From assembly GCA_025786725.1 (NCBI GenBank), contig JAHLTZ010000014.1, positions 124,001 to 188,000 on the forward strand: a stretch of 64,000 bases of DNA, written 5' to 3'. The position numbers and the translations under genes are program-made. How positions within the stretch are numbered: position 1 is the first letter of the stretch; each line of letters begins with the position of its first letter. Below the pieces are notes generated by a model, which was not told where the DNA came from, made no database searches, and saw only the letters and a program-made list of their open reading frames with translations. The DNA is from Syncephalis fuscata S228. Lineage: Eukaryota > Fungi > Zoopagomycota. This document shows, piece after piece, positions 52,013 through 56,386 of the stretch.

Positions 52013-53247
52013 ATGAATTCGCTACACATTCTTAAAGCAAACGGCACCTCTAATGACCATGTTGAAGATAGTTCCATTGATTTGGTGCAGCTATATATAG
52101 CTGCTTTCCTTTACGTCGTTTTAAGCGGCCAGATTTAAACTCGTCCTGGTTATCATTAGCTAAAGGTAAGCCGGAATGAGACAGGAAATACTGAATAATA
52201 ACTAATTACATATAGATATTTCTATGGTTATTGTTGGGCTACGGCAAGTAGTAGTAGTAGTAGCAGTATTTGAAAAGTATCAGCCATCTAACAATTTACT
52301 ATAGTTGTGCTATTTTGATCGACCAAGTAACAATAAGCTTACGTGAACTTGAAGATGTAGTTAAAAAATTATCGCTGCAGGTTGGTTTATTGCACAACTT
52401 ATATATAACTATTATCAACTAGAACTAGTTTCCGGGCTATCCAATACTCTGTAGCATTAATATAAAAGATTATGTAGTATTTATAACTAGTGGTAAGAAA
52501 AACCAAGGTACTATTGCACATACCATATTAATTGTTTTACTGTTATAGTTGAACAGTTACAAAAACGACTAGCTTGTAATATAAAATGTACACTCGATTC
52601 GTTACAATTTATATTGGTTGATCGTGCTTATAAACATCCTTGTATGGTATGTAGTTTAGCGATTGATAAAGGTTAAACTCATTATAATCAACTATATAGC
52701 TTGATGACAAATCCTACCAACAATTTACAGATACATTTAATCAAATAGTCTGTAGTTTGCGGCATTGTCTAGAATCACGCGCACCAGACATGTACACAAT
52801 AGAAGCAACATCATTTATAGAGTATGCTACTGTATCATTTATATGCTAAACATGACTAACATTAATATATAGCGAATCTATAATGATTGCTTTTACAGGA
52901 TGGATACTTGAATATCCAGCCATTTATGTACAAAAAGATTTAACTGGTGGTAATTGTTTAGCTGTCGAATCATTATGGTTGGTACGCGCATTTGCGTTCC
53001 ATGTTAATGACAGGTAACTATTTGTAATCTCAATAATTTAATATTAAATACAATATAACAATCTAGTGAACAAGAACATTTATTGCATAGCTTTAGTATC
53101 CCATGTGCACTTCTCGATGATGACACGCCCGAGACATGGATCAAACAATGGCGTGCAAATTGGCATAATCGAATGAAACAGCAATTGGTATGGCATAAAT
53201 TACGCATTTCAATAGAACAAGTGACATTGCCAGCAGTAATTTTGTAG
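52013..53247 (+). CDS. DUF4504/C1orf74-like (UPF0739) protein (multi-exon)
   Basis: DISMVIVGLR.AILID, IAFTGWILEYPAIY, NCL, LHSFSIP and C-terminal EQVTLPAVIL*. Confidence 0.65.
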
Positions 53248-53328
53248 TAGTTTGTTTCGTGAACACATTTATTTGTACACTGCCTCCACAGTTGTAATAA
53301 ATCATTTGGAGGTGGCTATTAGCAGACA

Positions 53329-54421
53329 CTAGGCCAGTTTCACCCGTTTAGTATGCTGGATTAAAGGTGTTGGCTCGATGTATTTGCCAGTATTTACGCT
53401 GGCCGTAGGGCCTTCGTTCTCCTTGTTCTAGTGTCAATGTCAGAGCCGACTATAAATTCTCCAAGGGTTATACATACTAATTCTATACGAGCGTAAATCT
53501 CGTCCATTTCCTCAAGTACGCGTGCAAGTTCTTCCTGTGCCTCTCGTAGTTCACGGCGTTTTATATCAAGTGCTACTAAATTTAAGCTACTAATACTAAG
53601 CATTATCATCAATTCTACTTACCAACCATAGGCTAATAGAATGTATATATGACAAATAACAGATCAGTTACAGGTAAATAGGCTGTTTAACACTTACATC
53701 CTCGCGTTTGGGTAAAACAATAGCTTGCCATTCTTCGCAATGTATTTCGTAGCTAATTGCGTTTAGTATTTATCATGACTGTGACGCAAATACTTGTAAC
53801 TTACACATCTTTATTGTATTGAATACGCCGTTTAATCTCTTCACGCGACAATTTATCTATCACACAACACTATTAGCTTATCTGCCACCCTTTTATCACT
53901 AACAAATCATCACTTACTGCCAGTATTAACAATACAGTTATTTTTACGCTTGATTTCTGGCCCTTGTTTCGCAGCATTGATTGCCCCAATGGCCATGGGA
54001 TCCAAATGAAGACCGGCAAATTCTAATAAACAGTCATCATAACATATATCTATAGCACATAAACAAGTGCTTACCAGCGGTACTTTGCTGTCCTAATAAA
54101 CGCTGCAATTGTAGATTCATCTGTGCCACCGTTTTACCTGGCAGGCAGCCCGAGTCGACTATTTTAGCCCAGCTACCAATGCCGAACTTCATAACCGCTT
54201 TACGCAGGATCTCAGCCTCATCCTGAGACCAACCTACAGGTGATTATACAGTTATATACAACAATACAATCCAGTTGAACAGACTCTAGCCCACTCAGTA
54301 GACCAAACAGCTACTTACCTGGAGAATAGGTGCAATTCCACAGAGAGGGTGAATCATTGGCACGGATAACATTTCGCTGTCCAGTAGGCATGCTACGTGG
54401 TTTTGGAGCAGTAGAAGTCAT
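53329..54421 (-). CDS. Myb/homeobox-like p1 (AMTP1) subunit of the MTA1c/AMT1 DNA N6-adenine methyltransferase complex (about 8 exons)
   Basis: Spliced translation: SPSLWNCTYSPGWSQDEAEILRKAVMKFGIGSWAKIVDSGCLPGKTVAQMNLQLQRLLGQQSTAEFAGLHLD...KRKNNCIVNTGNKLSREEIKRRIQYNK..YEI....IVLPK. A coiled coil and terminal TKRVKLA* follow. This matches the remembered ciliate p1 pattern SLWNYTLSPGW..FGIGKW..SGCLPGK..QRLLGQQS..RKNNCIINTG. Confidence 0.85.
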
Positions 54422-54667
54422 TGTTTCAGAGTAGACAACCGTAGAAGAAGGCTTAGACTAGATAATGACGCGTACAAGCAGTGTATTTCACGAAAGGTTA
54501 AGAACGACGATGAAGAAGAAGAATGGCGTATGAAGAAAACATAGATTAAAATTCAAATAGGCGGCCATTTACTGCACACAAACACACTAAAAAGAAGTGA
54601 CCAGAACGCGAAACAGACGCGTTTTCTTCTCTTCCCTTTCTTGTATATCTCTTTTCGCTTTAATAGC
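54422..54667. promoter_or_regulatory. 246-bp bidirectional promoter (p1/FANCL) with MCB- and SCB/E2F-like boxes
   Basis: ACGCGT at 54468 and 54617, and CGCGAAA at 54607, between divergent ATGs. Confidence 0.55.
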
Positions 54668-56386
54668 ATGGCTGACCAGGCTACGCTAAAGATACAACTA
54701 GTACCGCTTAATGCTCAATGTACACTGTATCATGGCCTTATTAGTTCTGTGGTAAGACATCGCTACACCGCCTATTTTTTGTATCTGATTAAAAACAAAT
54801 ACGATAGTCGATGGAAGGACAGCTAATACTTGACGTTGGCATTAATCCGACAACAAACCGTATGCAAGGTGTACGATGTATCAGCTGTAATGGACTTGAT
54901 CAAAAAACGAGTGAACGCTTAGATGCAGCCAGATCAGTTAGTACAATATATATATATAGTTAAATAGACCATTAACCTATTTACTATTTACCAACTACAA
55001 TATACATTTAGGCACTGGCATTATGTGAATCTATGGATGCTGTAGATACGGAATTACGTGCTGCATTGGTAATATACATTACATTGCTTATAGTTAAGTA
55101 GCTAACAACTCATTATATAAACCTGAAGGCCATCGAATCAGCACCTACTAGTATGATGGGTGTAGCGTCAGTAAATTCAGTTTCAGCAATTAATAGTCAA
55201 TTTTACGCAGCATTGTTAAGTGAATTATCAAATGTTAATTGGTCATATATACACAAATTAGTTTATTCGCCGTGTCAAGTAACCTTATGTGCCAAGTAAA
55301 TAGCGAATATTGGTATTAGCTACTGATACTTATAGTTTATCAATAGAGATAGCGCCAATCATGCTCATTATCTTACCGTGCAATTACCAGAAGCATTTCC
55401 TGACCTGCCACCGTATATTGTAGACAATAATCCATTAAGTAGAGCAATAACTATGGTGCAGTCCATCCCTGGTTGTTGGCTATCCAATTTAGTTGGTCAA
55501 ATGCAAAAGGTCGGTAAAGTATAAAGTAATAGAGCTGTATTAGAATTATTGTTTAGAAAATAGATGAATATGCGATTGTATGGCAACAATTACATGATGC
55601 CGATGAACAACTGTGGACATTAGACAGTGCCGATGAATTGTTCAGTCGACGTATTATTATAGGTGAGTAATTGTTGTCTTTTTGTATTAGTAATTAATTG
55701 ATGAATACTGATCATTAATAGGCAATCTTGTTTCCTTGGACATTACATTGAATGAGGCGGGGACACTGCCAGAATGGCGATTCTTTGGAGCAGAAACAAG
55801 TGTTGCGCCATTACGCAGTCAATTCTATCATCATTTATCACAATGGTATTTATTTTATATGGTTCATTATTACAATATGCAAATATTAATCACTTTTATG
55901 ACAGGGATACTCGTGCTTCAATTAAACAGAATTTAGAACAATTACTACAAATAACCCTACCTGCTCGATCAGATACCACCGATGGTCAGGCCAGTGGCCA
56001 TGAATGCGGTATTTGTTATGCTTACTGGCTAGAAAGTAGCGACACTACCAACCATAGTACATCTACCAAAACAAATCGTCATATTCCTGATGTTACGTGT
56101 CGGCATCCTGATTGTAGCCGCCCTTTTCATCGTGCCTGTTTAGTAGAAGTTAGTAAAAGTAATCAATTCATCAGTAACATTTACCAACTAGTCTTTATTT
56201 AATAATAGTGGTTACGTGCCGATACAAATGCACATCAAACGTTGGGTGTTGTATTTGGGTCATGTCCTTATTGTGCTCAGGTACGTAACACTTACAGTAA
56301 TAGCAATCATAGCAATCATATATTAATTATATTTTATATAGAGTATTAGTACAAATACACTTGTTCAGCCCATAACAAAGCATTAA
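54668..56386 (+). CDS. FANCL: Fanconi anaemia E3 ubiquitin ligase FANCL (multi-exon)
   Basis: LVPLNAQCTLYHG, LPEAFP..PP, RRIIIGN.VSL.I, LPEWRFFGAE..V.PLR and QNLEQLLQITLP. FANCL-type RING: ECGICYAY..PDVTC..PDCSRPFHRACLVEWLR..VFGSCPYC. Confidence 0.92.

Follow-up and report, generated by a model that had tools for sequence, protein, structure and literature searches.

The Syncephalis fuscata gene for a P1-family protein: a corrected model with a conserved 10-nt micro-exon and a predicted Mta1-docking helix

MTA1c is an MT-A70 complex that writes symmetric N6-methyladenine (6mA) at ApT. For early-diverging fungi it has been described as a complex of Mta1, Mta9 and P1, with P2 in addition in some species; the fungal P1 binds Mta1 and occupies 6mA-rich regions, is needed for symmetric 6mA in Mucor, and is essential in Rhizopus (PMC11258239, PMC12019607). 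Mucor is without p2 (PMC11258239). The co-occurrence of AMT1, AMT6/7, and p1/p2 is widespread across eukaryotes (PMC12695648). In Tetrahymena thermophila, p1 (AMTP1) is a protein of 360 aa with an SLWN..SPGW arm, a Myb/homeobox-like domain containing SGCLPGK and QRLLGQQS, an RKNNCI.NTG extension, a C-terminal helix, and a long acidic low-complexity tail. The helix is at the MTA1-binding motif, residues 152-183, which is helix-turn-helix-like and intertwined with the N-terminal helix of MTA1 (PMC9852454).

The window considered here, a stretch of 64,000 nt from Syncephalis fuscata S228, contains a minus-strand gene running from 54421 (the A of its ATG) to 53329 (the last base of its stop codon), whose predicted product likewise has the arm, the domain with both motifs, the extension, and the C-terminal helix. 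With a probability of roughly 0.88, it is the S. fuscata orthologue of P1 (ciliate p1/AMTP1), the Myb/homeobox-like DNA-binding subunit of MTA1c, with a full product of ~225 residues and a C-terminal helix that would dock Mta1. The gene fits the published pattern in which early-diverging fungi with high 6mA carry Mta1, Mta9, and P1, and in this sense the biology is not new; the useful new point is the corrected gene model with its conserved micro-exon.

The gene has eight exons (Table 1) and seven introns of 47-85 nt, all GT..AG, with the reading frame kept throughout on inspection of the sequence. The first-pass annotation had listed a set of protein motifs and proposed a compact p1 of ~220 aa; translation of the individual exons recovered all of the motifs from the minus strand. 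Exon 1 encodes SLWNCTYSP, with a G|W pair divided over its joint with exon 2; exon 2 contains KFGIGSW, SGCLPGK, and QRLLGQQS, exon 3 RKNNCIVNTG, and exon 8 KRVKLA with the stop codon. The micro-exon is required because frame continuity needs it. Exon 7 has a tandem acceptor 3 nt upstream (53575), also in frame. In intron 7, which is 50 nt long, the donor is GTATGT and the acceptor TAG, and CTGAC forms a branch-like site; an exon 7 running on without this intron is possible but disfavoured, because the resulting hydrophobic tail has no counterpart in orthologues, while the spliced tail matches that of Thamnocephalis. Homology searches were made exon by exon with the exons unjoined, and the figure of ~225 aa refers to a predicted product.

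Table 1. Exons of the P1 gene and intron 5 (window positions), and MT-A70 loci of the S. fuscata genome (genome G000, contig and position).
Feature	Location	Strand	Description
Exon 1	54319..54421	-	ATG and N-terminal arm KPRSM..RNVIR..SLWNCTYSP; ends phase 1
Exon 2	54075..54233	-	Myb/homeobox-like domain: KFGIGSW, SGCLPGK, QRLLGQQS
Exon 3	53918..54022	-	Post-domain extension, ends RKNNCIVNTG
Exon 4	53805..53856	-	KLSREEIKRRIQYNKD
Exon 5	53698..53752	-	YEI..EEWQAIVLPKRED
Intron 5	53633..53697	-	Retained in RNA contig and in deposited gene model
Exon 6	53623..53632	-	10-nt micro-exon: Pro-Met-Val and one base; flanks tattag| and |gtaagt
Exon 7	53478..53572	-	Amphipathic helix, predicted MTA1-docking helix
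Exon 8	53329..53427	-	Hydrophilic tail ending TKRVKLA; stop TAG 53329-53331
L001	G000:C306:340561-343827		METTL4-like MT-A70, DPPF in place of usual DPPW
L002	G000:C223:501758-503058	-	AMT1/MTA1 clade, DPPW present
L003	G000:C308:89972-93220		MTA9/AMT7-like, DPPL
L004	G000:C328:778307-781543		MTA9/AMT7-like, DPPL

The assignment to p1/AMTP1 in the first-pass annotation was borne out by the structural database, where the best matches were chains of Tetrahymena p1 and not generic Myb or TRF proteins. Exon 2 (52 aa) matched p1 chains 7f4l_E, 7yi8_C, and 8xyl_C at E 1.3e-15 over residues 25-74, with about 62% identity over 50 aa of the domain, and the next PDB matches, SNAPC4 (1.3e-5) and c-Myb (2e-4), were ten orders of magnitude behind. 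Exon 3 matched the same chains over residues 78-109 (E 0.003), collinear with exon 2. Exon 1 had no match in the PDB because the query is too short, and was placed later by a family profile. This profile (A1) is an alignment of 30 relatives, and itself matched Tetrahymena p1 at 2e-71, followed by TRF2 at 8e-6. Exon 1 occupies its positions 8-39 (E 2e-14) and exon 3 positions 94-127 (8e-17), while hhalign placed exon 5 in columns 154-169 (P 1.4e-6) and exon 7 in columns 182-203 (P 1.4e-3); exon 4 is 81% identical to a relative (P0021).

The exon pieces are thus collinear on the family profile, and they carry 16 of the 17 invariant columns and all 15 of the near-invariant ones in the 30-member alignment. 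The missing invariant column is a Gly whose codon is split between exons 1 and 2. A chance match is excluded by the strength of the exon 2 match, the collinearity of exon 3, and the retention of the invariant columns. Both the FG.G.W, CLPGK, QR..GQQS signature, with the SLWN..SPGW arm ahead of it, and the post-domain extension EF.G.H.D ... RKN..I.NTG (exon 3) are present. An exhaustive, library-wide HMMER search with exon 2 as query found 472 clusters, of which 142 reached E<=1e-10; full-length family members have one common architecture, and those with names are almost all from early-diverging fungi, including the experimentally studied P1 proteins of Rhizopus microsporus (P0170) and Mucor lusitanicus (P0060). 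On sequence comparison, the protein belongs to the P1 family along its whole length.

Pfam sees only Myb_DNA-binding (PF00249, 3.3e-8, in exon 2), and the weak PDB matches include TRF1/2, SNAPC4, and CDC5, as might be expected if the protein were a common Myb/SANT factor with a single repeat, or one of telomere type, and had no tie to adenine methylation. Generic Myb/SANT proteins (c-Myb R2R3, TRF1/2, SNAPC4) do share the three-helix fold class and the Pfam family, but they have no SLWN arm, GQQS/RKNN extension, or docking helix, and their scores are at least ten orders of magnitude weaker. The p1 match also takes in exon 3 and the C-terminal helix, both outside the Myb domain, and partner MT-A70 genes are present in the genome, so that a generic factor is very improbable.

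For exons 6-8, support comes from three independent lines of comparison: a full-length orthologue from another genus, a syntenic relative, and a motif common to the family. The closest full-length orthologue is THASP1DRAFT_27965 of Thamnocephalis sphaerospora (P0197, 227 aa), annotated only as a hypothetical Myb-like protein. It is ~90% identical over exons 1-3 and collinear through P-L-V-A at the position of the micro-exon, which corresponds to the same P-h-V tripeptide (h, hydrophobic). Exon 7 matches it at 58% identity over 31 aa (E 6e-8), and exon 8 matches its C-terminus at 58% identity over 33 aa (E 6e-5), where it ends TKRVKL-GQ. Exon 8 had shown no homology to the first 150 relatives, and a match came only with this orthologue. 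The second line is a syntenic metagenome contig of a relative (L007), with 68% nucleotide identity and the same intron positions. At the corresponding place it has a 10-nt micro-exon whose splice flanks are also conserved, although the adjoining introns have diverged. Finally, 44 of the 180 relatives of full length, Rhizopus P1 among them, contain a junction motif, LPK.EDP-h-h-h-LE.K, and its P-h-h is supplied by the micro-exon.

The helix columns of the family alignment correspond to residues ~159-181 of Tetrahymena p1, which fall within the 152-183 motif; in S. fuscata, the micro-exon and exon 7 together encode the equivalent helix. Because of this alignment inside an MTA1-binding motif, the segment that the first-pass annotation had called a coiled coil is better read as, most likely, a predicted Mta1-docking helix. 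The KRVKL end, described there as a nuclear localisation signal, did stand: it is conserved in Thamnocephalis and is likely to have that function. The N-terminal coiled-coil exon of the S. fuscata MTA1-clade gene was searched against the PDB for a p1-binding helix, and matched only designed coiled coils.

By analogy with the ciliate structures and with genetic work in Mucorales, the part encoded by exons 1-3 (N-terminal arm and Myb-like domain) would sit on the substrate DNA, the C-terminal helix (micro-exon 6 and exon 7) would pack on an N-terminal helix of Mta1 and so tether P1 to the enzyme, and the basic KRVKL tail would carry the protein into the nucleus. The known P1 proteins differ in some respects. 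Tetrahymena p1 is much longer, with its acidic tail, and its Lys44/46/47 patch is only partly kept in S. fuscata (S, A, K). The P1 proteins of R. microsporus and M. lusitanicus (the latter OAD01843.1) have the same architecture, including the LPK.EDP-h-h-h-LE.K helix start, but are also longer (290-301 aa), their basic or acidic tails being extended.

A further difference is in the recognition helix, which has Asn-x-x-x-Asn in Mucorales P1 and Val-x-x-x-Asn in S. fuscata, where the sequence is V-A-Q-M-N and the first of the two Asn residues (WER N106/N110 equivalents) is Val. The two Asn are reported to read AAC in fungal P1, with the Zoopagomycota as a named exception, which the substitution in S. 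fuscata matches. With the first Asn replaced, the DNA sequence preference may differ. Since ciliate p1 is without both, the Asn pair marks a subgroup and is not diagnostic of the family as a whole. With the S. fuscata gene, the published set gains a case from the Zoopagales in which the recognition helix differs from that of the Mucorales.

The first-pass annotation had described the gene as hidden, whereas it is already in GenBank, in shortened and unnamed form. BDF19DRAFT_440873 (P0241), a 167-aa "hypothetical protein" of S. fuscata, is 100% identical to exons 1-5, with its residues 1-34 corresponding to exon 1 and 141-158 to exon 5 (both 100%). Its C-terminal end is exactly the nine residues that result from reading into intron 5, before a stop codon (TAA, 53668-53670). 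The 187-aa model for Syncephalis pseudoplumigaleata (SYNPS1DRAFT_17890, P0205) likewise continues past LPKRED into the following intron and is without the helix, and its annotation probably misses the same micro-exon.

RNA was represented by one run containing the locus (X1; Logan contigs, 2017), whose contigs have zero differences from the assembly and are spliced, and therefore derive from RNA. One of them covers 54317-54406, over exon 1. Introns 1, 2, and 4 appear as exact joints, both introns flanking exon 2 being confirmed in this way by contig 3, and intron 3 is represented through a 13-letter loose end in contig 2. Contig 2 is then unbroken from 53752 to 53616, with intron 5 and the micro-exon unspliced. 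No X1 contig covers 53404-53615, which includes helix exon 7, and the X1 contigs contain no joint for the exon 5-6-7-8 splices; 53329-53403 is covered by a contig common to the convergent neighbouring gene. Minor forms are lost from such contigs, and missing cover is not evidence of absence. The RNA supports exons 1-5 and the deposited read-through form, and neither shows nor excludes exons 6-8.

It could be, then, that the real product is the deposited 167-aa protein, the DNA-binding half only, with transcripts that keep or end in intron 5 and exons 6-8 in disuse. The unspliced stretch of contig 2 and the uncovered region beyond it, the GenBank model, which is exactly of this kind, and the similar read-through in S. 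pseudoplumigaleata would all agree with this. Against it, the frame of exons 6-8 is open and their splice sites are canonical, the identity to Thamnocephalis is 58% up to the TKRVKL end, and in L007 the micro-exon has kept both its length and its flanks between introns that have diverged. Gene predictors commonly miss 10-nt exons, and the caveat on contig cover applies here as well. A product restricted to the DNA-binding half is accordingly considered unlikely, and the full ~225-residue protein is preferred.

Both forms might also be made. The deposited model and the sole RNA contig in that region stop before the docking helix, and inclusion of the micro-exon could act as a switch, in which retention of intron 5 would give a 167-aa DNA-binding P1 without the Mta1-docking helix and nuclear signal. 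Splicing would then tune 6mA deposition, or the short form would antagonise it as a decoy. This is a decidedly speculative idea; if true, a micro-exon switch or decoy would regulate 6mA deposition in a mycoparasite. On the preferred reading of a full-length P1, the public models in two Syncephalis species end before the segment expected to hold P1 on the methyltransferase, apparently because the 10-nt exon escapes gene callers, and surveys of MTA1c conservation or expression constructs based on these models would lack the docking helix and nuclear signal. With the complex itself already published, it is only this early end of the public S. fuscata model, ahead of the enzyme-docking part, that is new.

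Partner genes were sought in a scan of the 29.4-Mb genome with Pfam MT-A70 (PF05063), which returned four loci (Table 1), a lower bound. L002 belongs with the catalytic subunits of the AMT1/MTA1 clade: one of its exons matches Tetrahymena MTA1 at 1.7e-14, with 80% identity over 35 aa, vs. 2e-3 for METTL3. L003 and L004 represent the non-catalytic MTA9/AMT6-7-clade partner (MTA9/AMT7 chains 2.3e-9 vs. METTL14 2e-3). They are inverted copies, 99.5% identical, with neighbouring genes duplicated too, and differ by nine substitutions, all transitions, and ~8 internal indels of one or two bases, one of them at an exon start. The pair could be a recent duplication, uncollapsed haplotigs, or a product of long-read errors. 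L001 matches an Arabidopsis METTL4 chain (2.4e-15), and no METTL3- or METTL14-like locus was returned in the scan. The ciliate complex also needs p2, and a search of the whole S. fuscata genome with the P1 family profile for a p2-like paralogue returned p1 itself and, beyond it, only a Myb gene with multiple repeats. Of the MTA1c partners predicted from the first-pass annotation, MTA1-clade and MTA9-like genes are therefore present, the former with a one-base frameshift in the assembly, and p2 was not found by this search.

This frameshift counts against the favoured interpretation; the MTA1-clade gene is single copy and the apparent loss is in its catalytic domain. One T is missing from a T run (L002 ~2040-2055), and the frame shifts between ...LQSDGLI and FIWVINAKY.... 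No second genomic copy of MTA1 or p1 was found. Alternative splicing as a way around the frameshift was rejected, as the only candidates depend on introns of just 9-26 nt or on the loss of conserved residues. The P1 gene might thus be a relic of a decaying system, its MTA1 writer a fresh pseudogene and P1 persisting alone or in another role, and the 1-nt indel by which one of the two MTA9-like copies differs at an exon start could be taken in the same way. The other MTA1 exons are, however, all intact, including the one so similar to that of Tetrahymena, and in a PacBio genome one-base homopolymer deletions would be the usual residual error.

The organism does have 6mA, as the first-pass annotation had proposed: the published PacBio SMRT-based value for S. 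fuscata S228 is 1.07 %6mA (PMC11258239, Fig. 1 source data). In view of this value, an assembly indel in L002 is judged more likely than a pseudogene, and decay of the system improbable. In the literature searched, no main text mentions both Syncephalis and 6mA, and Syncephalis is absent from the Nature Genetics supplements.

The P1 gene is closely flanked on both sides. Downstream, an RNA contig for the plus-strand neighbour covers 52883-53403, with the coding part ending at ~53247; as it reaches into P1 exon 8, the two genes are convergent with overlapping 3' ends. Upstream (window 54422-54679), a divergent plus-strand gene begins ~250 bp from the P1 ATG, with an RNA contig starting at 54679, and from the shortness of this gap between divergent starts, the two would share a short bidirectional promoter region.
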